Shown here one piece after another: positions 1 through 41,800 of a stretch of 44,432 nucleotides of DNA (within the stretch, counting starts at the first letter, position 1; every line of letters begins with the position of its first letter). The translations under genes and the position numbers were made by a program. The stretch lies in NCBI GenBank assembly GCA_000708835.1, contig DF237633.1, forward strand, positions 1 to 44,432, written 5' to 3'. The DNA comes from Klebsormidium nitens. Its lineage: Eukaryota; Plantae; Klebsormidiophyceae. The notes below the pieces were generated by a model, which had not been told where the DNA came from, made no database searches, and saw nothing but the letters and a program-made list of their open reading frames with translations.

Positions 1-139
1 GCCAACGCTCAACGAAAGCAACAGACGCATGGTGCAAATCCTCCAACTTTTCACCCGGTGGAGTCCGTGGATGAAAGTCGTGATTTAAGAAGAACGGTGT
101 CTGACCCACAGAAGAGTGAAACGCTGCATTGTGGGCAAA
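1..139 (-). mobile_element. Ty3/gypsy integrase C-terminal fragment (cut by window edge)
   Basis: Near-identical to 10681-10819. Minus strand reads FAHNAAFHSSVGQTPFFLNHDFHPRTPPGEKLEDLHHASVAFVERW, the gypsy integrase '(Y/H)N...H.S.G.TPF' region. Confidence 0.85.
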
Positions 140-2206
140 ATACGATCGAAAATCGGCGTCCAAAATTTGCCCCGCAGCTTTCGGGAAGCGCCTTCGCGGC
201 GCTGAACACTTGAATTGTCGCAGCGCCTTAACGGCGCTGCGGTAGCCGGGGCTCACCCTTCCGATGTTGTGGGGATCTGCAGGTTAGTGGGCCTTTTGAA
301 AGCTTGTATCCTTCGATTTGCGCGGCAGCAATTTCTTGAACGAACAGTGAAGCTGGATTGACTATCATTAGTATGAGGTGTACTTGACATGGAGTACTAG
401 CACACTACAAAGGGACTACAGACGTCGAATCGCCTTTTCAATTCTAGTCGCAAACTAGCATCCCTTGTTTGTTTTGCAGGATCCGCAACAGGGACGTTCT
501 TGCAGAGTGGGCCGTTGCATTCTGCGAGTGGGTGCAAGCACCATTGTGGACGTGGGAGGGGGAGCATGATGACGAGACGCTGGACAGGTCCGATGAGTTG
601 TTGCCTGTGTTTGAGGAGAAGTGCCATGCGCTGGCGCCCTTACAAAAGTCCCATTGGTGCTTCCGGAAGATGCACGAGACGTCCAAATTCACGGATTTCA
701 TCCGACGGTTCGGGTCGCCCCGGTGGTTCTGACGGAGCGAGGGGAAAGGCGGCACCACTAGGTGAAAAAGTGGTGGAAGGAGACAAACGGGAAGGACGTC
801 TCAAAGTCGCTGCACAAGTGGTGAGCAATCCATCCTTCTGTGCTTCGCACAGCGGGTCTTTCCAGTCACTTTCTAGTAGCATTGGAAGGGTCAGATGGCC
901 TCACGCACACCTTCAAATGTAGTCAGTTCGTCAGTACTATCTGAAGACCTGCGCGCGCTCAATTGTCTTCTTGTTGATGCTTTCTTTTTGCGTCTGCAGC
1001 TGGAATAACGCGCTAGCCATCGAATCAATCGAGGCGCAGCGGGCAGAGCTGGCCGAGTTGCAGAGTTACATGATGTGTACGACTCAGCGATGTTGGAGGC
1101 CTTGGACGCTAATGGGGAGGGTGGGGAGAACCGGCTCAACAAGACGGAGCTCTTCACCATTTACTATCCCAATCTACTAGTCCTGCCGGACCGCAAGGAC
1201 CAGGACCTCATCTTCGGGGGTAAGCCTTCAATATAGGGTACTGTTGCCCGACTGACTTTAGCGGCAACTCCTAGCTAGCAACATTTTAGGGTGACATTTC
1301 ACAAGGCATCTCCCTCAAAGCTTGAGTTGCTCGTCTATAATAGGTTTTTAAGTGACGATTACCATCCCCCGAAAACGTTGCCCCGTTTTCTAAGGAGCTT
1401 ATTCCATGTTGCAGATTGGGCAAAGGGTCGACAACTTCGGGACTGGATGCGGCGCATTCCGCTGTTGAAGGATCTTCCGGTCGCGTTGGCGGCTTACTTC
1501 ATGGACGATGAGGACATGCCGACTGCACGGAGGAGGGGGTTAAACATGATGGAATATCTGTCCGGCAAAATAAGCGAGCGGGTAAGCCACAACAGCTAAT
1601 AATACCAGCCAACGTGACCGTCTTGCCTTTTCAAACTCTGGAGGCCCTTGCAAAGAAGTTGCAACTTTAGTGTGGATAAGCTTTTGAATCCACGCTTTAG
1701 TCTGTCGTCCTAGTCAAGAGTCCTACGCTGCCATGTTGCAGATTGGTGTTGTCAGCTCCTGCTACGTGGTGCCGCACGAAGGAGGGAAGGAGCGGCTACA
1801 AAGCGCACGAGCAAGCGCAAACTACCACGGCGCCACAATTCTGAGTGATTTGCAAACACGGGATGGAAACAACCCAGCAGACCCGAATGCGAGCTGGTAT
1901 GGCACGGCCCACTTGTTTTTTAAGGCCACTGAGTCGAGGCGGGTTTGGGATAATAACAAAGGCAGGCGGGTGACGAAGAATATAGTCCACGATTTAGTGT
2001 TCATCCGTTGGTACAATGAGACCGGTTACCTTGATGCAACGAAATGCCCGCAGCTAGAGTGGGAGAACCGGCCGGGAAGTCCTCCCGGCACTCCCCATTG
2101 CACTGTAGAGAGCATTAGTTGCATTAAGTCTGTTCAAATGATGGTGCCCAAGCACACGTTTACACACGGCAAAAGCTTAGTGTACAGAAACTTGTACTAT
2201 AGGTAG
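140..2206 (+). pseudogene. Decayed, intron-containing Plavaka/CMC-like DNA transposase (3' part)
   Basis: Spliced fragments with GT-AG introns at 283-479 and 1582-1741, plus one at about 821-998. Contains KMHETSKFTDFIRRFGSPRWF(fs)TERGERRHH*VKKWWKETN, resembling the 'H...I..FG....TE.GE..H' motif. C-terminus reads RASANYHG..SD...WYG..LFF...LVFIRWY...V.SI..V.MVP. Frameshift at about 730 and an in-frame stop. Family assignment is from motif recall. Confidence 0.7.
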
Positions 2207-2633
2207 AGCAATCTCAAGACGCTAGGATGAACACATTTGTAACATTGTAGTGTGGCAGACTTTCATTGAGTAGACTTGGAATGGATCGCCAGTGCTCACA
2301 AATGATGAAGCATTCAACAAAATGTCCCACCCAATTTGCAGATTACCTTGCGCGCGCTGCGTCGTGCAGCTGGCGCGAGCATTCAATATTGGCTCTTTGA
2401 TTGCATTTTATTGAATCCATGCGCCGGTGCAGCTTTATGGTTTAGAGAGAATACATAGCACCTTGATGCTAGTTCAAGCTCTTTATACAGCCGACCAAGT
2501 ACGGAAATGTACAATGCAATCACTAGCATCAATTTACCGGTATGACAACAGTTGGCAGAGACCCAAGACTTCCCGCGCATCTATTCAAAACAAGCTGCCG
2601 TGAGAACCAACTATTGAAACCGTGCGCCAATGT

Positions 2634-4397
2634 CTAGAATTTCCCCCGCTTTGCTTTCACCTGCTCAATCATAGCCTCGTGCTCTGCTATCAATCCCGCA
2701 TCCTGTCTAAACTCCGCCCTCGCTCTCTTGAAAGCTTGCATCTCGCTCTCGTCTCCCGTTCCTGCCGCTCCGCTTTCTCCGCCGCCCGTTAGTCCTTCGC
2801 CTTCCCACTCGGGTCCTCTAAGCTTCACTACCATACTCATCAGCTGTTGGGAGCTTGCATAGCCGGTTTTGTCGACCGGCAAGCCCTCGCTGACATACAT
2901 CGCCTCGACCATCATGTTTCGCCCCGGCTCATCAAAGGCTTCTGGCAATGCCCGCCTGACGAGATTCTCAGAAAAGAGAACCTCGTGATCCGATGTAGGG
3001 AACGGGATAGTCGTAGGAAAGAAGCGGGAAAGAACGCTAAGAAGCCAGAGGTTGTGCTTTGCCTTGAACTTTTCAGCGATCTTGGCGTCATATCTGATCG
3101 CCATCACGACCGCCTCTCCCGGGATCCAGAAGTCCTCCCAGAACCCACGACCCATATTGCCAAGACCCTTAACCGGCGCCTTACCCGTCGTCTTCCTGCC
3201 CGGCTTCTCATAGAACGAGCTTCCTCCGATCTCTTCTTCCTCCTTCTCCAAGTCCACCGACCCTAAGTCCTCGCTCTCCGAACCCCCCTCCTCGGACTCG
3301 CTCTCCTCGATCTCGCTTTCCCCTTCCAAGTCCGTCTCCGTTTCCCCCGAATCGACGTCTGCATTCTCTTGATTGGCCGTGGCAGAACGCGAACCCCCTG
3401 CGCCGGCCGCCGCCGCTTCCGAATCGAAAGCTCGGGCGCCGCTTCAATCACATTTGCCAAATTTTTCAGGAATTCTCGCCGAAGCGCCACGTGGTCTCGC
3501 CCTACAGCTTGATACTGCCAAACCGCCCGCCTCATCGCCCCTTGAATGCCCAACCCCTAAGAGACGGCGGAGCGCACGACAATCTTTGCAAAGGCCTCGG
3601 GGGTGCGGTCTGCGGCACAGAGGTCACCAAGCCCAACCCTAAGAGTGGCGGCCGATGATCCTCACGCACGAGCGGCCAATGCTCGCGCCCGGGTCCCAAC
3701 TCCTTCTTGCGGTTCGGCCCCCGGCACTACATACCCGATTGCCCGGATCAAGCGCTCAGGACTTTGAGACACCCTCGCCTTCCACTTCCTTCGCCACCTC
3801 AAACTCCGACTCCTCGTCTCTATCTCCCAGCGGCCGCCATCCCAAGTCCTGTGCCCCGACGTCGCCTTCTCGCTCTTCGTGTGGCGTCCCAACCGCACCT
3901 TCCCTTTCTTTTCTATTTGCCGAATCACGCAACATCTGGTACAGCTGGAACGGGTGGGCATTGGTCCCCGTAGCGTACTTTAGCTGCGTTTCCGAGTAGT
4001 ACGCCCCGGACAACCCTCTAACGACAAACACGGGGAGCGCCCTCACCATGTCCGCCATTGCCTCCCCCTCCCTGCGCAGCTGATCAGCCGTACTCAATCC
4101 CTCACTCGCCCAAGCTTCCCGCTGCTCTTTCCACGTCTGCATCTGGATGCTAGTCTCGGCCCACGTTCCTCTCTCCAACCATTCATTGAAGACGTACACG
4201 GTCGCGTCTTCAATGGAGACCGTTCTTCCCTCCAGCCCCTGGTACTTCGACCCACTGACCGGAGGCTGGAGAACACCATGCCCACGGGCCTTCTGAGCGC
4301 CGAACAGGTCGTTGATGAGTTTGCACCGTGAGTACCACTTCTCCTTGGCCGGACCTTCCTCTGAACTTGCATTGCAGGAACCGGCGCACGCATTCAA
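2634..4397 (-). pseudogene. Unknown protein (ORF2) with acidic/low-complexity centre; frameshifted, probably transposon-borne
   Basis: Protein-like ORFs 3756-4397 and 2634-3329 are joined by frame-switching pieces (ERLIRAIGYVVP; MRRAVWQYQAVGRDHVALRREFLKNLANVIEAAPEL). GC-rich and purine-biased like a coding strand. No family recognised. Confidence 0.55.
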
Positions 4398-5320
4398 TTT
4401 TGATTGATCATTTGCGGAAATTTGAATCTGTGCGCGGCGGCCGCGGCTAGAGCATTACGCGGCCGCGGCTCGTCTATTGAGCCGCATCCGCACAACAGGC
4501 CCCAACACTCGCGCACAAATTCAAACCGCGGCAGGAAAGACCAAATCTTTAAAACTGTGCGCAAACCTTCCGCGGGCGGCCGACGCGCGCCTGCTTGATG
4601 GCGCGCGCACGCACGCGCTGCATTTGCACAGTTCGGCGCACAGATTCACAGAGTGCTGCCAGAGAGTCCCACTGTGAAATCTTGCGCTACTAAGCATTGT
4701 CTATTTAACACGTACATGTGAAGCGTACCTGGTTCTGGAATGGAGGCAGTCCTCGAAAGCTCCTCGACGAAGGACGCCAACACGGTGCCCAACGGCAATT
4801 CTTCCGTCCGCTGTGACTTCCTTCTCCGAAAAGACCCTCCAATCATGCATGAGCCGGGCGCACACCGGCTTGCCCTCCAAGGCCGCGGCATTCGCAGCTA
4901 GCGTAGCTGAGATATCTAATTGAACGTCGAAAAACGATTCTGGTGGACTGGGCCGCTCTGCAAAGATTAGCGGGCAACATATAAAACACTTGAAATATAA
5001 CTGTGACTCGCTTTATAATTTTAAGCAGTGTACAAGTAGATTCATGTTTAGCAGAGGTCGCCTAGTAAACATGATGCAAGCGAACATGACACTTTGCTCA
5101 TCACAAGAATTCACTGCCATGTTTGTACAACCCCAGGAGTGTATGGTATATACAAAACAAATGGTTGGTTCTCTAATGGCAATTGTCAGGAAGCACCGGC
5201 TACAATCTTCATGTTCTCAATTCCAGACAAAAACGACCCTAGGTAGCCATTTCTAAAACAGAAAAAAAGCTTGGCAAGTTATTAAAAGCTATCCTACCCG
5301 CTCCACTTGCACCCTCTATC

Positions 5321-7127
5321 CTACTGGTCTTGTTGGGCAAGTAGCTCCTCCTGCCCCTCAGCCACCAGGAGCGCCGCGTCGAGCTCCACTTCCTCTCCCC
5401 CCCCCCCCTCAGCGTGCTGCTCCTTGCGCACCGGCTCCCGGTTCTCAGCCAGCTCCCGGGCCCTCTCCGCTGCTTCAAGCTTCTCATGCGCCCGGGCGTC
5501 TTTCAACGCCTCCTTCCTTGCCTTCTCCTCCAATGCCGCCTCGAGCACCCTCACCCTTTCCGCTGCAGCTGCCGTCTCGTCCTCCTCCGCCTCCTCCTCC
5601 TCCTCACCCCGGGCCTCCCGCTCCACCCTATCAAATTCCCTAACGCGCCTGTCGTATTCCGCCCTGCGCCGCGCTTCACTACCGGTGCGTTTTGCCTTGG
5701 GCGGACGAACCCAGTGTTCGGGATCCACTCCCTCAAGCGAGGGTCCCACTCCGCACGGCCGGCAGTCTCTTCTTCCGCCGGCGAGTACTTCACCGCAGAC
5801 TTTAGCACCTCCGTCTTGTCCCCGGGAGTATCTCCCCGAATGCGCCGTGCAAGCTTGAATTCCTAAGTTGGGTTGCAACGTGACCGGCTTGGCGTGCACA
5901 GCTGCAAAGTTGGCGTCTTCGAGGACGTTGGATGAGTAGTCCTCTGTAGCAGTTTGAAGCGCGGTGACTGTGTCAATGGTCCACCTGCAATAGAAGCAGC
6001 GCACAGATTCATTGGCGCCTTGCTTTTGCGGTGAAATGTGAAACCATGCGCGGATTGCACATGCCCCAGATGAAAGGCGCGCACGGATTCAAAAGTGTTG
6101 CATTCAAGCTAAATTTTTGAAATCTCGCGCCGGATGGGAAGACAACACTACAAGGGAATTGTGCAGCCCAAAGGCAAACTAGAAGTGCCCTCACGACGCC
6201 ACAGTTAAGAATATTAAGAAGAGTAGGTAGGAAATGATAACGAGTCGCCCGCTCTAAGAATATCAAGTTTGAAGATGGTAAGACGAGCGGCGCGCAACCG
6301 TTCAAATATCGAGCATCAGGACGTCTGAATTGAAAGCATGCGCAGTCTCAAGCAGAACAGATATTTGAGGGTAGATGCAGTGAACTCCCTTAAAAAATAA
6401 AGGTATTGAGAAGAATAGAGCAAAACCAAAGGTGCCCATCAGCGGTTTTCAACAAGCTTGGTAGTAAAAAGGCATTATGAAGCAAGTGGGCCGCCCAATA
6501 GAAGGATATTACTTGATACAAAAGGGCGCATAAAACGATTGAAATAACAGTTTAGAGCCATTTCACAAACGGCATTGCGTCAAAATGCACGAAATAAAAG
6601 CTGCTGCATTACAAAGAGGGCTACACAAATCACATTGTCTTCAAACCCGAGCTTACAATTCCAAGCCTGCGCTAGGAGGTCACATTGAGGCACTCACCGA
6701 ATGTCGTCCCGCCCTGAGACCTTGCTGGTGATTTCCCTAATCACACGGTTGAAAGGCAAGCGGCGAATGAGAAGGCTGCCGTATCTCTGGAACTTTCTGA
6801 TTTCCTTGAGGGACCGGGGGAGGCGCGCCTTGTAGCGCTTCTTGGCGGGCGGCTCCGAAGTGGGGGTAGGCGGGTTTTTCACAGCCACGTCCCGGCCTCT
6901 CTTCTCACCCGACACGTGTTGCTTGCCCTTGTCTGCAGTCGCCGCCTTCCGCGTCATTCCTCAAGCCTTTTGCGCTTTTGCTTCAGCTTTTCTAGGTGTC
7001 TGTTCAAATTGGGAGGCTTTTTCATGGGCCCTTTGCCCCCGCTGCCCTGCGCCGGCTCCGTCGCATTAGTTTCCTGGACTTGGTTAGAGGGCCCTGCTTC
7101 TCTTGGCCTGACGAATTTTTGCCGCAT
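5321..7127 (-). pseudogene. Histone H3-like (CENH3-like) gene with ~170-aa charged C-terminal extension; 2 exons, frameshifted
   Basis: Exon ends at 6698 (cg|GTGAGT), intron 6697-5985, exon resumes at 5984 (TGCAG|g tgg). Spliced fold reads KKRYKARLPRSLKEIRKFQRYGSLLIRRLPFNRVIREITSKVSGRDDIRWTIDTVTALQTATEDYSSNVLEDANFAAVHAKPVTLQP[+4 nt]KEFKLARRIRG, which aligns with H3 residues ~37-132. Frameshifts at about 6958, 5864-5867 and about 5700. Start could be 7127 or 6957. Confidence 0.9.
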
Positions 7128-7260
7128 TTCGAGTGTTGGCCGACGGGGACTTGAAGATCATTAGAAGCAAGGTCAAGCGCCCTAATGAGTTAAGCGCCCT
7201 TTGCCGACGAGCCTATCTTGGAAATGATGCTGATTGGATCATGTTTCCCGCTAGATCCAG

Positions 7261-7293
7261 AAACCCTAGGTATCGTGACCCGCTGAAACCCTA
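7261..7293 (+). promoter_or_regulatory. Two telo-box (AAACCCTA) motifs
   Basis: AAACCCTA at 7261-7268 and 7286-7293, between the H3-like start (7127, minus) and gypsy gag (7721, plus). Function not shown. Confidence 0.3.
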
Positions 7294-7720
7294 AATGGGG
7301 TATATCCAACACGTGCGCGCGGGCATTCACACATGCAGAAGTATTGCAGGGTTTGTGAATCTCCGCGCCCCGCGGCATGAGCCGCGGCTCCTGCGCGGCG
7401 CCGCGATCGGCGGTACGCACACGGTCGGCACCATGCGGCACGCAGGCATGAACAACCAGACATGTACCCGGCACACTGGGCGGCATCACAGTACTCTGAT
7501 GCACGGCAACACAGCTGCCGGTCACAATGCGGACCGGCACACATACCGCCGCGCACATACCTCAAGTGCGCCGCGCGTTAGAGAATACCGCCGCACGGCG
7601 ATCGACTTTGCCCCTCGAACCGGCACCAACATGTGCGGCAGCTGCGCGGCACGCCCCGGTCGAGCGTGTTTACCAGCGGCACACCATCCTAGATATGCGC
7701 GGCGATACCCGATTTTTCTG

Positions 7721-10386
7721 ATGCAGCAAGCTCATGCTACGGCTGCACAGGCACAACAGCAAGCTCAGGCTGCTGCCGTTGCAGCTGCTGCAGAGCAGGT
7801 AAAGGCCTCGCCTCCTTCCAAGTGGGAGAATAAGGCGAGCAACCCGCCCATTCTGGAGTGGTTCGATCAGATCGAAGAGTATCTTCGGAATACGCCTAAC
7901 GCTAAGTACCTATTTGCGTTTGGCGTCTTCATATCTGAATGGGAAGCCAAGGTCGTATTGGTTCTTCTCAGTATGTTGTGTATCAGCGTGCGAACCCAGG
8001 GTTGTATCCTCGGAATGCTCGTCAGTTTTTCAGGGACACCATGACTCGTGGGTATGGTCTGAGGACTCCCATTCAGTCTTATTGGGACACCTGGAATAAT
8101 CTCAAGCAGGGATCCACAAGTGTGGATGAGTACAACGTTGCTTTCGAGCAAGCTGCTACTAACCTTGCCGCTGAGATTACAGACGAGCAGATCAGGATCG
8201 AGAAGTATCGGTCTGGTCTCCATGTGGATCTGAAGAAATTGTGCAGAACGTCTCGCAACGGTACTCGTTGGAATGCTCTGCGTGATCCTATGAAGTACGC
8301 TACTTCGCAGTGGCCAATGATCGAGGAACGCTTGGAGCGTAAGCCTGCCCAGTCCACCAAGTCGGTGGCTGGCAAATGTAAGGCGTCCGGAAGTGGCTCC
8401 GGGAGGACGTCGAAGGCGGGGCTGTCTGCTGCCCTTACGGACGAGCAGTACGCTTATAACATGGCGAACCGCCTGTGCCACAACTGCGGGAAGCCTGACC
8501 ATCATGGCATGTTGCAGCAGACTCTACTGAGGAACCTCAAAATAGCAGCAATAATGGGAAGGAACAGAAGAAGGGTAGGAAGGATTTTCAGAAACGCTAG
8601 GCAGTGCAGGACTGTTGTCTAGTGTTGATAACTCTGTGTTAGATCTGTCAGAACAAGACTTCCTGACAATATCAAACATTACTGGTCGTATCTTTGATAT
8701 GGGAGTTCGTCGTTCTGAAGATTCTATTTCCACATATNNNNNNNNNNNNNNNNNNNNNNNNNNNNNNNNNNNNNNNNNNNNNNNNNNNNNNNNNNNNNNN
8801 NNNNNNNNNNNNNNNNNNNNNNNNNNNNNNNNNNNNNNNNNNNNNNNNNNNNNNNNNNNNNNNNNNNNNNNNNNNNNNNNNNNNNNNNNNNNNNNNNNNN
8901 NNNNNNNNNNNNNNNNNNNNNNNNNNNNNNNNNNNNNNNNNNNNNNNNNNNNNNNNNNNNNNNNNNNNNNNNNNNNNNNNNNNNNNNNNNNNNNNNNNNN
9001 NNNNNNNNNNNNNNNNNNNNNNNNNNNNNNNNNNNNNNNNNNNNNNNNNNNNNNNNNNNNNNNNNNNNNNNNNNNNNNNNNNNNNNNNNNNNNNNNNNNN
9101 NNNNNNNNNNNNNNNNNNNNNNNNNNNNNNNNNNNNNNNNNNNNNNNNNNNNNNNNNNNNNNNNNNNNNNNNNNNNNNNNNNNNNNNNNNNNNNNNNNNN
9201 NNNNNNNNNNNNNNNNNNNNNNNNNNNNNNNNNNNNNNNNNNNNNNNNNNNNNNNNNNNNNNNNNNNNNNNNNNNNNNNNNNNNNNNNNNNNNNNNNNNN
9301 NNNNNNNNNNNNNNNNNNNNNNNNNNNNNNNNNNNNNNNNNNNNNNNNNNNNNNNNNNNNNNAGGCATAACCGTAAGTCCTTCTTCTCGGACTATGCGTT
9401 TGGCGAACGATGTTGTTGTTGAAGATATTCTGGGTGAGGCGACAGTGTACGTCCAATTAGGGGCGTTTCACAAGCCTGTGAAGTGCTATGTCATGAATTT
9501 ATTGTACGAAGTGGATCTTATACTTGGCGATGAGTTTATGGACAAGCATAATTGCATTATGCATTATGGCAAGAATTGCGTGATGATCCAGAAGGGGAAA
9601 AGAAATACAACTGTGAAAAGCCCTGCTATTCCTCGCTTGCAAGTCGTTGAAGAAAAGAAAGCTAATCCCAGTGTGTTGTCTTATTCGCAGATGAAGCGGT
9701 TGATGCGGAAGGGCGTTCCTATGTACTTGGCCTCGCTGAAGCCAATGGACGATTGCGTCCCGCCCCAGGCCGTCGACGCTTCATCCGTAGCTGGCTCTGT
9801 TGGGTCTCCTACAACTGTGTCCCATGAACAACATGTCCAACCGATCGACCCCGTCTCAAGTGAGAAGAAGTGGGTTTCCGATTTGCTGTCTGAAATTTTT
9901 GAAGTGTTTCAGGGTCCAATGCCGGTTGACTTGCCTCCTATTCGTGCAGAAGGTGACAGTATTCCTACCGAGCCAGGTCATCCACCTACGTTTATGCAGA
10001 TGTACCGTTTATCTCCTTTGGAATATCGTGAGTTGGAAAACAGGTGACTGCGTTTCTTAAAGCGCAAATTGTGGAGTTTTCCCAATCTCCGTATGGAGCA
10101 CCTGTTCTGTTTGTTCCAAAGCCCAACGGTCGTGGTCTTCGTCTGTGTGTGGATTATCGAGCGCTAAACTCGATAACCATCAAAAACCGTTGTACGATTC
10201 CTCGTATTGATGATCTGTTAGACGCTGTGTCTGGATCTCAATATTTCACTTCGCTTGATCTTACGTCTGGCTACCATCAGATCTTGATTTCGGAAGAGGA
10301 TCGTCCGAAGACTGCTTTTCGTACGCCGTTTGGGCATTTCCAGTTCAAAGTGTTGATCGAAGGTTTGACGAATGCTCCGGCAACGT
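7721..10386 (+). mobile_element. Degenerate Ty3/gypsy retrotransposon: gag, protease region and RT N-terminal half
   Basis: gag with EWFDQIEEYL, LKQGSTSVDEY and zinc knuckle CHNCGKPDH (frameshifted). Protease C-terminal DLILGDEF. RT reads [66 protein letters not shown]. Frameshift at about 10042. Spans the 625-N gap. Confidence 0.93.
8738..9362. other. Assembly gap (625 N)
   Basis: Run of N. Confidence 1.
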
Positions 10387-10827
10387 CTGACCTCTAAGGC
10401 TCAAGCAGAGATACGTGAAATACAGGATGAACACGCCAACCTGGATTCATCTTCAGCTTGTATGCTACGGGACCCACAACCTGCTCGACTTCAAATGGAC
10501 CAATCCATTTGGGGAGAAGCTTGCGAGAAGTCTCGCCACGCTTAATGTTAAGATACTTCGTACTCAAAAGAACCTTATCTCCCACAGAGAACGTTTTCTC
10601 TATTCGACGCTGGTCTGCATCCGCTTTCTGTCTCTGTTGAGCTGCAATTAAACACTTGCGAGCAAAGGCGAGAGCAGATTGCCAACGCTCAACGAAAGGA
10701 ACAGACGCAGGGTGCACATCCTCCAACTTTTCACCCGGTGGAGTCCTTGGGTTAGAGCCGGAGTTAAGGAAAAACGGTGTCTGACCTACAGAAGAGTGAA
10801 ACGCTGAGTTATGAGCAAACTCCGCTC
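10387..10827 (-). mobile_element. Inverted Ty3/gypsy integrase C-terminal fragment
   Basis: Minus strand reads ...QRQKADADQRR..FSVGDKVLLST...KLLPKWIGPFEV..VGPVAYKL..HPVFHVSLLEP*, the GPY/F region upstream of a chromodomain position. Confidence 0.92.
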
Positions 10828-10847
10828 NNNNNNNNNNNNNNNNNNNN
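10828..10847. other. Assembly gap (20 N)
   Basis: Run of N. Confidence 1.
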
Positions 10848-11410
10848 TTGGAAAAGCAGGTGACTGCGTTTCTTAAAGCGCAGATTGTGGAGTTTTCCCA
10901 GTCTCCGTATGGAGCACCTGTTCTGTTTGTTCCAAAGCCTAACGGTCGTGGTCTTCGTTTGTGTGTGGATTATCGAGCGTTAAAGACTCGATAACCATTA
11001 AGAACCGTTGTACGATTCCTCGTATTGATGATCTGTTAGACGCTGTGTCTGGGTCTCAATACTTTACTTCGCTTGATCTTACGTCTGGTTACCATCAGAT
11101 TTTGATCTCAGAAGAGGATCGTCGTACGCCGTTTGGTCACTTTCAGGTCAAAGTGTTGATCGAAGGTTTGACGAATGCTCCGGCAACGTTTCAGACCGTT
11201 ATGAATTCGATCTTTTCACCTTATCTGAAGAAGTTTGTCGTCGTGTATTTAGATGACATTCTTATCTTTTCGAAGTCTGAGGAAGAGCACCAGACGCATG
11301 TGCGTATGGTTTGAGATGTCCTGCGTCACGAGAAGTTTTACGTGACGAAGGCTAAATCTAAATACGCTCAGACTGAGATTCAGTACTTGGGGCATATTGT
11401 TAATGATCGA
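10848..11410 (+). mobile_element. Second Ty3/gypsy RT fragment including the YLDD motif
   Basis: Paralogue of 10034-10386, continuing FQTVMNSIF..VVVYLDDILIFSKSEEEH..*..YLGHIV. Lacks the 15 bp encoding PKTAF, has a frameshift and a stop, and ends at about 11410. Confidence 0.92.
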
Positions 11411-12766: not shown

Positions 12767-15700
12767 CTAAGTAAGCAATGGGCGTTCAATTCCTTGCTCA
12801 CCATAGCTAATATTTTCCCCCGCATATACTATCTCTAGGGATCTGGCTAGTTGCGTGCCCGTATTTGCAGCTTGAATCTCCCAGTTCGTGAGCCATACCA
12901 AGGTCACCTCCGCTCCTAATTGTGCTACGTCAGCAATGACCATCCCCATCCATAGTCCACTAACGCCTGGACGCTCTTTGAATCCAAGCACGAACGATGC
13001 AACGATCCCAATTGGATATTGAGTAATTAACACTATGAGGAAGACAACGTGGGGACGCGCACTGCCTTGCAGAATACCCTGTGCGACCTGCTGTGGGCTG
13101 TCTAGAACGGCATACAAAGCAAGCACAAGGAGGATCTTGGATGCGCGGCGGACCATTTCGGGCTCCGAAGTCAGGAGGCCGATTAGTGGGTTACGGAAGG
13201 CCGCAAGCGCAAGGGCAATCACAGCACCGAGGCCGAGGCCGACTAGGAGGAAGGCCCTGGAAGCAAGAGCCGCGATCTGGGGCTTGTTTGCCCCTAGGGC
13301 CATGGCGATTCGCGTACTGCAAACCAGCAAGAGTGTGTGAGGCGCATTCACCGTCCTGAGAGCCGCCGAGCTATCGATGGATTGAGGATGCTCAGCAAAA
13401 TGAAGGTTGTGGAATCGCTAGCAGCGAAGCAGTACCTTCCATGCGGAAACCTAGTAACTGCAAGTGACCAGAACATTCTTCATGACTGATTATTGCATTT
13501 GCCTACTGCGGAGCATCTGATATGAGTCGATTCGACTGAAAAGCCAAGGACGAACGAGCTTCCGCGGGGCCCGGTTGGCATAAGCGGTGTAAGGCTAGGC
13601 CTTGGTTCTTCTGTTCGACACGGCCCAGGCTAGCTTTGCACCCTACTCCCGGAAAGCATTCGAATTGGAGCAAGTCACTTGCTCCAATGAAGAAGTCAAT
13701 AAACCGGAGCTCTCCTCCACTTTGAGCCGGCTTGCACGAAATTCATCCGGGCCCCATCATCGATTTCTTTTTGAGGAGGCAGGTTTTTGTTTGCTAAACA
13801 GTTGCACAGCGGCCTCGCTCCCGAGAAAGCGCTTTACTTCCTGCCACCAATCTGGTAACGCCTTTGTCTTCGACGTCAAGTACTTAGCCCTTAGACGACG
13901 AGATGACTCACCTTGACGCCGTTGCGACACCAAAGGTGATCCCAGAGAGCACAGCGTTGATGTAGAACGCAATGGCAAGGGCAGCAATGTTGTAAGCAGG
14001 ATTCTGCACGCGCACACGGAGCTCAGTAGGTAGCATCGTCTGGCCGGACAAAGGTACGATGTCAAAGGCCGGAGCAAATTTTAGCTGCGTAAACTGATTG
14101 GCGGCTACAAGCATTTTGGAGTCGGAACACAGAGGGCAAAACGGCTGACCACCTTCTACTTATGGTGCCTTCTGTTCTGCACGCTTTCTTTTAGTCTATT
14201 GGAAGCACACTGCTGATAACCCACAAGCTCAGAGTCAAGGTGCCCCTAGAGCAATCCTGTTCGTTGTGTCAGAAATCCTAGCTGATACGACTCTGCTTGC
14301 TGATGTTGCGGAACAACAACGAGAAAGCTGGATGCCCAACATTTCGGCGGACCGCCAATTCAATCTGCAACTCCTCTGCCAACTGACAGAGCTGCAAGAG
14401 TGGGCAACGATCAAGGAACTCACCGGAAGCCAACCACCCATCAATACCAGCGTTTCGAACGACCATACTTGCAACCATAGTGCGGCACAGCAAGGAACTC
14501 CCAGTCTGCAAACGCCAGTCTCAGAGTCATGGTTTGGTACTGTGAGACCTCTGCCAGTAGGCCGCCTTTGCTTACATGCAATCCATCAACATTCGCAGCT
14601 TGAAGGGCTGCTTCTGTAAGTGGGTCAGTACCGAAGGCGCAGTCCTAGCTTCATTGCAAGACGTTAGAGGACTCACTCTTACGGAAGCTCGATATCTTGA
14701 TGTAGATGATCCTCGGACTCGTATAAAGAGACATACTCAGTAATAGAGGCAACTTGCTGTAGGGCCCCCACAGCTGCACACTCAAAGATCGCCTAAGACT
14801 GAGCAGCCTCGCACTGTAAGATGTCAAAATTGAGCACGAACGCACCTCAAGAAAGTACCCCAACCCACAGCCCATACACGTGGCGACCATCCAGGCCAGC
14901 ACGGCGCGAATGTCTGGTTGTAGGCTCCATGTGACACAAGGAATACGATGTGCACAATCTCGAAGCAGTACCCTGCAATTGCAGGCCCAACGACTCCCAG
15001 TCGAATGTAGTCCATGAACAGATAGTTCAGGGGGATTTGGAGCAGAAATCCGCGGGAGGCGCCCATTGCAATTGGTGTCGTGTGGCCCTGCATGGAAGAT
15101 GTTGAGCTTTGTGTCCACAGGTTTCCTTGCTCTTGAGCAGACTGCGGTTTCAAAAAAGTGAAAAGTGCAATCAGCAATACAATATGTCTTTCCAAGTCTA
15201 GCCTGTTGTCATGCTGACAAATGGTACACATGTGCTTCAGCAAGCGTGCCAGACCTTTCCTCTGAAGTAATCGGTAAGTTGTCAGAATGACTTGAATTCT
15301 GGAGTACATTTGCTGAGCTCTTATGTACTGCCTGTGGACTTTGCAAGAAGAACAGTGCGTAAAGAAATTCTGGCTCACAGTGCAGCGGGATCGAAGCTCG
15401 ACATGCATCTCAATGTGCGGCAGACTTACTTGAGACCGCGCAAAGAGACGGAGCGGCATGACAATAGCCATTAGACTATTTTGGGGTAGTTGATACCGCA
15501 GGAAAAGTCCAGCGATAGCGGCAATCTCTTTGGGCTGAGCGCACGCCAGCAAGATTGCTTCAGCATTCAGCCAGAGTACAGATATGGGCACGTCGGCAAG
15601 CAACAGTATGATCAGGCTCCTTTGCAACCATGCACCCTGCAAAAACAGCATTGCATTCTAATATCTACCAACAGCAAGAGAGTACCCAAAGGAGCAGCCA

Positions 15701-38800: not shown

Positions 38801-41800
38801 CCTTTTCCCTGCGTTCTCAACTGCCATTAAAAGGGATTCCGTATCCTTGCGTTCAAGTTCGCTGCTCTTTGTCAGGACCTACTGCCTTTGCGTTGCTATC
38901 AATCGCCTTGACGAGTTCTCGTCATGGGTTGTCCTAGTTCTTGCAAACGAAAGTGTCAGCCAGTAAAACGCTGAGTGTTTGTGGTCGTGTTCGTTCTGTG
39001 GCGATGAGATTGGACCGTCGCCATTTCCTTTGCGACTTGCTTGATTTCATTCCCTGCTCCACAGAAGTTGCGCTGCCAGACGCTCCGCAATCCATAAGAT
39101 GTCGCATTCTGACGCACTTGTCCTTCGTCTTCCTGGTTTCTCTTCTCCTGGTCACGAAGTGTCAACTGCTGGCGCAAAGAGCCCTTGCTTTATCTAGATG
39201 CGTTCCTCAGCATGCTCATTTCAATGTTGCTTAGTCATCGTTGTTTTGCATTCTTTGTTCTATCTTGATGTATACATGTGTTCGTTTGCTTCGTTTTTCA
39301 TTCTACCCGCCTCCAGTGATCGTCAGTTTCCGTCCGTCGTTGTTCCTCGTCTCTATGTTTTGTAAAGTCGTGGGGAGCATGTCTCCGGTACCTGTGAAGT
39401 CCCCAGAATTGATTTTCAAACCGGAAACACGTCTCTCACTTCAAGTGTTAAGATGTTCTTAACCTGTTTAAAGTTGTCAAAGACATCTCTGTGATTCCTG
39501 TGACATTGTCAGAAATGTCAGCATGCGTATTGCTCTCTACAGGCACGTGCCTTGGACCGCAAGAGTCAGGAGGCACGTGACGAGGCGATGGCGCTGCTAG
39601 ACGAGCTGGAGCACCGACAGGACCCCGAGGCGACAGCTGGCAACCCCGAGGACGCGCCACGTGGCACCACCGAGGCGCTGCCACCTGGCACCAGTGGCCG
39701 CATGTCATTCGGCGCGGCGGCTGCCGGTGTGAGTAGGCCCCACGCAAGCGACGATGAGGGCGGCGATTTTGAGGGGGACTCCGACCTCGAGGGGGGGTCG
39801 CAGAGCGAGGGGGAAGCAAAGGGGGAAGCAAAGGGGGAGGGAGAGGGGGGACGTCGGAGAGGGGGGGCAAAACGGGGGCCTGCTGAGGGGAGGGGAAAAG
39901 TGGAGATTCTGGAAGGGGAGGGTGAGTTGGCGCAGCTGGGGCTGCCGGGGGGGTTCCGGACAGCAACGGAGGGGCCTGTGAGCGTGGGAGGAGGGGGGGT
40001 GGCGGAAAGCATCGAAAACGGGGGGGGTGACGTCAGCATGGAGGGAGGGGGAGAGGGCGGGGAGCGCGCTCACTCGTGGTTGTTCCGGAGTGGGGGGGCC
40101 GAGAAGAGTAGGGCGGAGGGGGGAGTAGCGGACGAAACGATCTCAGCGGGGGCCACGGTTAAGAAGCATAAGCGGGGTTTAAACGGCGTGGAGATTGCGG
40201 GAGTAAAAGGGGGAATGAACGGTACTCAGAAAGCGGGTTCGGAGAGTTTGCACGTAGATGGGGAAAACAGTGCGCAGATAGCGGGTTCATCGGAAGTACG
40301 GATAGGCCCTGCGGAAGAGAGTGGCGCGAAGAATGCAAACGAAGGGAGTGATGGTCTTAATGCACGACCAGAGCAGAATGGGGGGGTAGATGCGGTGACG
40401 TTTTTGGAGGGGGGAAGCGAAGACGAGGGGGAAGGCGTTCCGGGCGCAGATCTGCTGCAAACAGACCTGTCACAGGCGGAACTGGTCCGAAGGGCGTTTG
40501 CGGGGGATGACGTGGAAGCGGATTTCGAAGCTCGCAAGGCTGAGATGGTGAGGTGACGTCAGCTTGGTGGATGTCAGCTGAGGCGTGTTGAAGTGACTGT
40601 GTGGCGAGAGTTGTCCTGGACTTATTGTTGGGCTGATGGTCACACCAGGTGTGGTGACGAGTGCCGGAACCTTGTCTAATGAGAACGCATACATGTTTAT
40701 CAGTGGCCTCGACGAGAGCAAATATGAGCTGATGCAAGGTCGTCTTTCCGCAGCAGTTCGGCTCTCGTCGAGCAGTCCGTCTGTTACTTATGAACGAAAG
40801 AGAGATCTGACACTAGACTCGCTCCTTTCTTCACTCTATGTGGGTTTCGTACTAAAGTCGGTTATTAAAATTCTTCCGCCATAATACCGTTGCACGAATA
40901 AGACTTGGCCATCGATGACCCGGTGATTCTCCTTAGTTGGGTTGTAAAGATCTTTCGCCGCAAATTGCTTGTCACTATCCTGATCATCATCTGAACAACC
41001 CGACGTTTCAAATTTACCGCAAAACAAAGAAGTCCCCGCCATCGGCCTGGTCAACCCAATAGATGCGAGGCTTGTACTCCTTGGTTCTTAGATTCAAACC
41101 TGCACAACCTCGCAATATTTTGCTCTTATAATGTCGTTCAAGAGTTTGAGCCTGCTGCTCAACCGAAAGAATCTGGACAAACCCGCCGTCTCCGTTTCGC
41201 AGCTGGACAAAGAAGTTCCGGCCATTGAGGGCCCGGTGCTTCCCCTCACTTGCGGTTCAAAGAATTTGCCACGACTCGCCCGGTCACCTTTTCCGTTGGT
41301 CGTCTAACAAACCCGCCGTTTCCGATTCGCAGCTGGACGAAGAAGTCCCGGCCATTGAGGGCCCGGTGTTTCTCCCGTTGATTGCGATTCAAAACCATTC
41401 CCCACGCCTAGTCTCCTTTTCCGTCATTCGTCTAACAAGTCCGCCGTCTTCATTCCGCAGCTTGACGAAGAAGTTCCGGCGATTGAGGGCCCGGTGACTC
41501 TCCCCGGGTGGGGCCAATGGACTGGCGTCCAGAAGAAGAAGGGGCTCCCCGGTTGGATCGTGAAAGAGCAGAAGGATAACGAGAAGAAGCGGAACCAGGC
41601 GATGGCGAAGCGGCAAGACGCCGGCAGGAAGCACGTCATTATCAGCGAGAAGTGGGACAAGAAGGTGAGGGTGATTGACTATCATTGGAGACACGTGTTG
41701 TCCTCAATGCAGAGCACGTCACTGGGGTTTTGTTCGTTCAAAGCGCGTCCTTCCGGGAAATTTGTTCCAGAACGTTGGCAGGACTCCTGTCTGCTCAGGT

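Follow-up and report, generated by a model that had tools for sequence, protein, structure and literature searches.

Cargo-carrying giant Plavaka elements with chromatin-related accessory genes are known (10.1101/2025.02.11.637652; PMC12730594). Those of red algae possess three accessory genes, PAG1-3 (10.1101/2025.02.11.637652), and Plavaka elements of fungi carry TET/JBP (PMC12730594); the known giant-Plavaka cargo consists of TET/JBP, SET/methylase and ParB-like genes. Streptophyte algae are among the reported hosts of Plavaka (PMC13519894), and Plavaka/CMC elements have TGT..ACA, CATCA..TGATG or CAC..GTG inverted repeats at their termini and target-site duplications of 2-3 bp (PMC12730594). 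The hAT transposons of Dothideomycete fungi took up histone H3 and multiplied it, the host H3 coding sequence having been transduplicated recently (Dhillon et al. 2019, PMC6710886). Our literature search found no paper on a Plavaka element with its own histone gene. Here we describe a locus of the charophyte alga Klebsormidium nitens at which the remains of a probably CMC/Plavaka-like transposase gene, an orphan partner gene, ORF2, and a histone H3-like gene lie side by side. The locus is on contig DF237633.1 (assembly GCA_000708835.1), the whole of which, a scaffold of 44,432 bp, was analysed and is referred to as the window.

We read positions 284-7130 of the window as the dead, 5'-truncated remnant of a large cut-and-paste transposon, probably of the CMC/Plavaka type, of which the H3-like gene is most likely the third gene. 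We assign this reading a probability of roughly 0.6. The initial annotation, made from the sequence, had reported three decayed genes within ~7 kb, in the order transposase (plus strand), ORF2 (minus strand) and H3-like gene (minus strand), and homology for each of them bears out both the order and the strands. The pieces that we recognized, including one conserved open reading frame (ORF) beyond the three genes, are as follows.

479-828, plus strand: transposase exon a, around the last catalytic-type motif (tblastx to positions 4-360 of metagenome contig L001, 66-76% at the amino acid level)
1000-1219, plus strand: transposase exon b, with a frameshift at ~1065 (frame-by-frame comparison with L001)
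1415-1581, plus strand: transposase exon c (tblastx to positions 942-1103 of L001, translations and splice signals)
1742-2206, plus strand: last transposase exon, encoding the tail domain, intact and including the stop codon (matches to L001 and to a second metagenome contig, L002)
4957-2634, minus strand: ORF2, one gene, here a pseudogene (homology mapping)
5321-5984, minus strand: H3-like exon 2, encoding helices alpha2-alpha3 and a conserved extension of ~170 amino acids with a coiled coil (Pfam Histone)
6697-5985, minus strand: H3-like intron of 713 bp, GT-AG (the annotated protein P0045 joins exactly exons 1 and 2)
6698-6957, minus strand: H3-like exon 1, encoding a divergent tail, alphaN, alpha1 and loop 1 (Pfam Histone, E = 4e-8)
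6954-7127, minus strand: conserved ORF of 57 codons directly upstream of the H3-like gene (tblastn with residues 1-57 of P0046)

Each coding piece was searched separately.

The locus resembles the giant Plavaka elements in combining a multi-exon, probably CMC-type transposase with additional conserved genes, part of them chromatin-related and part without a known function, and in that most copies are degenerate. By contrast, its accessory genes encode an orphan protein of 750 amino acids and possibly an H3-like protein rather than TET/JBP, SET/methylase or ParB-like proteins, and neither typical Plavaka termini nor target-site duplications of 2-3 bp were found in the window. The resemblance to the fungal hAT case lies in the association of a DNA transposon with multiple, mostly inactivated H3-like copies. 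However, the H3-like family described here is old (40-64% identity among its copies), is ~45% identical to canonical H3 in the fold and bears its own conserved C-terminal extension of ~170 amino acids. An old, diverged H3-like family with its own extension therefore points to a maintained gene and not to passive capture.

The transposase gene and its ORF2 partner

Only the last four exons of the transposase gene are present (479-2206, plus strand), their borders having been set from splice signals read in the sequence. The initial annotation had the gene starting at 140, a position that proved to belong to an intron or to junction DNA. Between ~284, where an integrase-tail-like fragment starts on the opposite strand, and 479 the sequence is all intron-like, and the gene thus lacks the part encoding the catalytic front. 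Exon a contains a frameshift at ~731-747 and a TGG-to-TAG stop at 759-761, where the intact L001 exon encodes tryptophan. The damage in the four exons totals two frameshifts and this one stop.

A word search with the last ORF of the gene (1688-2203) returned 11 protein clusters at the 90% level with identities of 52-84%. These clusters are ORFs of 125-172 amino acids from ENA, Logan and JGI assemblies, and we therefore consider the tail a conserved terminal exon (alignment A2). When JGI metagenomes were scanned with this alignment, two contigs, L001 and L002, were found to hold the tail exon. The gene is thus multi-copy in the manner of a mobile sequence, its tail occurring in 11 clusters from several assemblies and at two metagenome loci. 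L001 is collinear with positions 475-2206 of the window, block by block, at 50-76% amino acid identity (tblastx). Similarity at the DNA level between the two is confined to exons, specifically the first two, which is the pattern expected of coding-constrained exons parted by free introns. An AlphaFold model of the transposase tail was unusable (mean predicted local distance difference test score, pLDDT, of 41).

Two further observations concern these exons. At positions 499-560, L001 has a frameshift of its own inside exon b ('SWNNSLAIDDMD' and 'LEAQRTELQQL' being read in different frames), and this metagenome relative is therefore decaying too. In the window, an exact 16-nt repeat, CCATGTTGCAGATTGG, occurs at 1404-1419 and 1731-1746, in each case spanning the splice acceptor and first bases of one of two successive transposase exons; we estimate its chance expectation within 8 kb at ~0.01.

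Membership in Plavaka/CMC is defined by a DDE catalytic domain, Pfam PF18759 (Plavaka) or PF02992 (Transposase family tnp2), and the catalytic front of this transposase is absent from the window. In Atlas, a protein-language-model resource whose neighbours serve as leads only, the nearest clusters to the piece at 448-729 are DUF4218, then Plavaka (score 0.87), then DUF6830; those nearest to the tail exon are hypothetical proteins of Basidiomycota and DUF6830. DUF4218 is the C-terminal part of CACTA-type transposases. In addition, the motif 'FGSPRWF.TERGERRHH.VKKWWKETNGKD' resembles what we take to be the last catalytic region of CMC transposases. The transposase is thus probably CMC/Plavaka-like, and the name given to it in the initial annotation is plausible from its language-model neighbours, although Pfam does not recognize the part present.

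ORF2 had been described as a decayed minus-strand gene, which it is; its structure is revised here to a single gene that is interrupted by one or more introns and lacks its first exon. The first exon found, 4957-4729 (acceptor AG at 4959-4958, donor GT at 4728-4727), shifts frame at ~4795. An intron runs from 4728 to ~4400, from where coding continues to the stop codon at 2636-2634. This 3' stretch is frameshifted at ~3765 and ~3420 and interrupted by stop codons in frame at 3664-3662 and 3559-3557, for an overall damage of three frameshifts and two stops. An ENA protein, P0003, is 87-90% identical to ORF2 and reads through its three frames and two stops, which indicates that ORF2 is a single gene. 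Because of the acceptor at 4959-4958, an initial exon must exist; it was not found, and there is no start codon within 360 bp of 4957.

In an all-against-all search, the C-terminal 269 residues of ORF2 yielded 29 clusters at the 50% level, including K. nitens GAQ92529.1. Intact relatives encoded by a single ORF (P0016, P0022, P0031 and P0032) comprise 721-819 amino acids, 819 being the greatest length among the 29 representatives. In more distant relatives, no break separates the start and a basic, Pro/Ser-rich tail from the remainder of the protein. The family (alignment A1) is conserved in blocks: one at the N-terminus, a helical one in the middle, then a long acidic linker and a C-terminal domain. 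Family members had no match in Pfam, and a profile search of the PDB with the ORF2 alignment found no relative among solved structures. An AlphaFold model (pLDDT 56) had no Foldseek match at E up to 0.001 and only generic helical matches by VIA-align (Z up to 7.3). Scans of JGI metagenomes with the ORF2 alignment, and of bacterial and archaeal genomes and viral contigs, returned nothing. By these comparisons ORF2 represents a multi-copy orphan family.

The pairing of the two genes was observed at a second locus. On L002, a soil-metagenome contig (JGI), the last transposase exon (657-1136, plus strand) and the C-terminal ORF of ORF2 (1997-1635, minus strand) lie tail-to-tail, separated by a spacer of 498 bp versus 427 bp in the window. 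The L002 proteins are only ~59% (transposase tail) and ~45% (ORF2) identical to those of the window, and the arrangement is therefore old. Contigs of identical size suggest that two further assemblies hold the transposase tail and ORF2 on one contig: a transposase tail (P0036) and two ORF2 proteins (P0011 and P0029) come from Logan contigs of size 5865, and a transposase tail (P0039) and an ORF2 protein (P0007) from ENA contigs of size 14653. By our rough estimate, chance would produce ~0.07 matches of this kind in the ~360 pairs. Overall, the transposase and ORF2 are well supported as a conserved mobile pair.

For these two genes, then, the one-element reading of the initial annotation stands, with the tail-to-tail arrangement recurring in L002 at 45-59% protein identity. 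ORF2 is not the single-copy gene, unlinked to the transposase, that would have spoken against that reading, given its 29 clusters and the pairing in L002. The same data bear on the possibility that the three genes are unrelated pseudogenes and chance neighbours without shared history. All three are decayed and no termini unite them, as this possibility would have it, but the transposase and ORF2 are arranged alike in L002 and probably on two further contigs. Because of the recurrence in L002, chance is excluded for this pair, and for the trio we regard it as highly improbable.

CACTA/En-Spm elements have a two-gene organization, encoding the transposase TnpD and the DNA-binding protein TnpA. 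The present pair is similar in that a probably CMC-type transposase appears to travel with a second element-encoded protein. It differs in that ORF2 has no detectable Pfam similarity and is encoded separately, in convergent orientation, and not produced by alternative splicing. Because it is constantly found with the transposase, we infer that ORF2 may be an accessory factor that binds DNA or chromatin.

The H3-like gene

The protein encoded at 6957-5321 (minus strand) is P0045, which is 100% identical to GAQ90781.1, 'histone H3 [Klebsormidium nitens]'. Pfam Histone (PF00125) matches both exons. The initial annotation had recognized a decayed, spliced gene; its structure is corrected by the GT-AG intron of 713 bp and the conserved 57-codon ORF upstream. 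Two compensating frameshifts, at ~5865 and ~5700, were observed in exon 2, and the alternative frame between 5862 and 5700 fits the family consensus. Accordingly placed between these frameshifts, ~55 residues of the annotated product of 307 amino acids are out of frame and helix alpha3 is destroyed.

The searches returned three relatives, namely K. nitens GAQ93086.1 (P0046) and, from Logan, the ORFs P0047 and P0048. The latter two are 64% identical to each other and 40-43% identical to the window copy. The family shares the end of alpha3, 'KDI.LARRIRGD', and an extension consisting of 'PGDK...RIPGTG..PPKA..GSEA.R.A.YD', a coiled coil and 'NREPVR'. GAQ93086.1 is out of frame through alphaN and alpha1. 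Since GAQ90781.1 and GAQ93086.1, both annotated 'histone H3', are frameshifted, both are pseudogene products. The H3-like family is thus old, conserved as protein, multi-copy and decaying, and a family of this kind behaves as a transposon gene, unlike a recent capture of host H3.

The 57-codon ORF is ~81% identical to residues 1-57 of P0046, as counted by eye. It is out of frame with the H3-like gene in the window and fused in frame in the paralogue GAQ93086.1, and it may be the true H3-like N-terminus.

In the PDB, the H3-like protein matched 176 H3 and CENP-A sequences with E values up to 1e-16, placing its fold, from alphaN to alpha3, in the histone H3 family. Centromeric H3 (CENH3/CENP-A) was considered as its identity. 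In common with CENH3, the best score was to S. pombe Cnp1 (tied with canonical H3), alpha2 opens with a tryptophan in both proteins, and the N-terminal tail has diverged. By contrast, the protein scores equally against canonical H3 (E ~1e-16 for both), is multi-copy and decaying, and has a long coiled-coil tail. With equal scores to Cnp1 and canonical H3, multiple copies and both annotated copies broken, the gene was not identified as CENH3.

A separate observation concerns the N-terminal tail. The H3-like segment VAVKNPPTPTSEPPAKK (6888-6838, minus strand) resembles the segment MATEQEPTSSSEPPLKK in the N-terminal tail of distant ORF2 relatives (P0032 residues 7-23). This likeness is marginal (BLASTP E = 0.034 over 17 residues in a single pair) and may be due to chance in a low-complexity region.

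The layout of the H3-like gene and ORF2 admits an explanation in which the two are one spliced gene, encoding a giant histone-fold fusion of ~1,000-1,100 residues as a single accessory gene. Consistent with this, the first recognizable ORF2 exon opens at the acceptor 4959-4958 with no start codon of its own within 360 bp, and the relative P0031 also begins exactly at the point corresponding to 4957. However, in the three H3-like relatives the protein terminates at one and the same conserved point, QQ(E/D)(G)Q and then a stop, and no correctly phased GT donor was seen just before the H3-like stop. Moreover, intact ORF2 relatives of 721-819 amino acids lack a histone fold and possess a start and a basic tail of their own, and none of the 29 ORF2 representatives exceeds 819 amino acids. 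A fusion in the window is therefore not favoured, and we consider it improbable.

Boundaries and the place of the H3-like gene

The first 12 kb of the scaffold are rich in repeats, and ordinary genes lie beyond; there are no tRNA genes in the window. The features surrounding the three genes are as follows.

1-283, minus strand: integrase-tail-like retrotransposon fragment, left boundary (translation read)
7300-11400, plus strand: Gypsy-type retrotransposon with gag, a possible protease and reverse transcriptase, right boundary (Pfam and ORFs)
12767-15651, minus strand: MatE transporter, an ordinary host gene
39552-40556, plus strand: Utp14, an ordinary host gene

Gypsy debris had been reported on both sides of the three genes, in agreement with these features. 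The left fragment is truncated internally at ~283 and had no match in Pfam; its positions 1-147 recur, with 86% identity, at 10681-10827. To the right, the conserved ORF upstream of the H3-like gene ends at 7127, and the plus-strand gypsy element, gag and then reverse transcriptase, is present by ~7300. Its gag gene (7939-8622) matches Pfam Retrotrans_gag and is followed by reverse-transcriptase-like ORFs. This element is broken by assembly gaps, including one of 625 N at 8738-9362. A 354-bp piece of reverse transcriptase at 10033-10386 recurs at 10848-11189 with 90% identity, flanking a 20-N gap (10828-10847); the duplication has the appearance of a nested copy or of a scaffolding artefact.

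On the strand that they share, the H3-like gene immediately precedes ORF2, and the frameshifts in both annotated K. nitens copies match the typical decay of transposon genes. Adjacency, multiple copies, frameshifts in both annotated copies and an old, conserved family make it plausible that the H3-like gene is the third gene of the same element.

Several results weigh against the reading of 284-7130 as a fragment of a CMC/Plavaka element with three genes. As to class, none of the transposase pieces present, nor the intact exon of L001, had a match in Pfam, and the superfamily name draws on the Atlas leads and the motif given above. As to extent, an inverted-repeat search around the region yielded no convincing terminal inverted repeats and no target-site duplications, in keeping with the initial annotation, which had reported no termini. 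As to the third gene, the missing initial exon of ORF2 blurs its boundary with the H3-like gene. The contig sizes of the H3-like relatives (9105, 4436 and 3349) match none in the other two families, which carries little weight because cluster representatives were compared. Concerning the termini, the 5' truncation removed the left one, and on the right the region meets the gypsy element at ~7130-7300; their absence from the present fragment does not show absence from the transposon family.

The contig sizes, which link no H3-like protein to the other two families, also speak for an explanation in which the transposase and ORF2 form one transposon, whereas the H3-like gene, present in multiple copies, is independent of them and came from a host gene family or as a passenger with some other element, in a graveyard of nested repeats. 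The region is indeed a nest of truncated elements, with gypsy sequences on both sides and an internal junction at ~283. On the other hand, only ~360 bp lie between the H3-like stop and the first recognizable ORF2 exon, the two are on the same strand, and no repeat boundary is visible between them. We consider a separate unit unlikely, though worth keeping in view, and retain the reading in which the H3-like gene belongs to the transposon fragment.

Proposed functions and significance

Nothing in the present copy can work, because the catalytic front of the transposase is missing and all three genes contain frameshifts or stops. For an intact element, we infer the following functions, as we do the membership of the H3-like gene. 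The transposase, encoded by many exons, would excise the element and insert it again. ORF2, a conserved orphan protein of ~750 residues with a basic tail, helical domains, a long acidic linker and a conserved C-terminal domain, would accompany the transposase gene tail-to-tail as an accessory factor, for example as a binder of the element's DNA or of its chromatin. The H3-like protein, an old, diverged H3 variant with a coiled-coil extension, would let the element influence the packaging of its own DNA.

A bolder proposal is that a Klebsormidium family of the Plavaka lineage keeps its own histone, an H3 variant with a CENH3-like loop 1 and tryptophan and a coiled-coil tail, together with the acidic ORF2 as its chaperone or targeting factor. 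By packaging or marking its own chromatin, such an element might avoid being silenced or steer its integration. We hold this proposal as speculative and rather doubtful.

Dead and truncated as it is, the present copy has allowed the transposase-ORF2 pairing to be confirmed against an independent metagenome contig, and it has exposed the GenBank 'histone H3' entries GAQ90781.1 and GAQ93086.1 as products of frameshifted pseudogenes. If the H3-like gene does travel with the element under selection, this would be a eukaryotic transposon that brings its own nucleosome component. It would then be relevant to the ways in which transposons evade or exploit silencing by chromatin and to the origin of lineage-specific histone variants.

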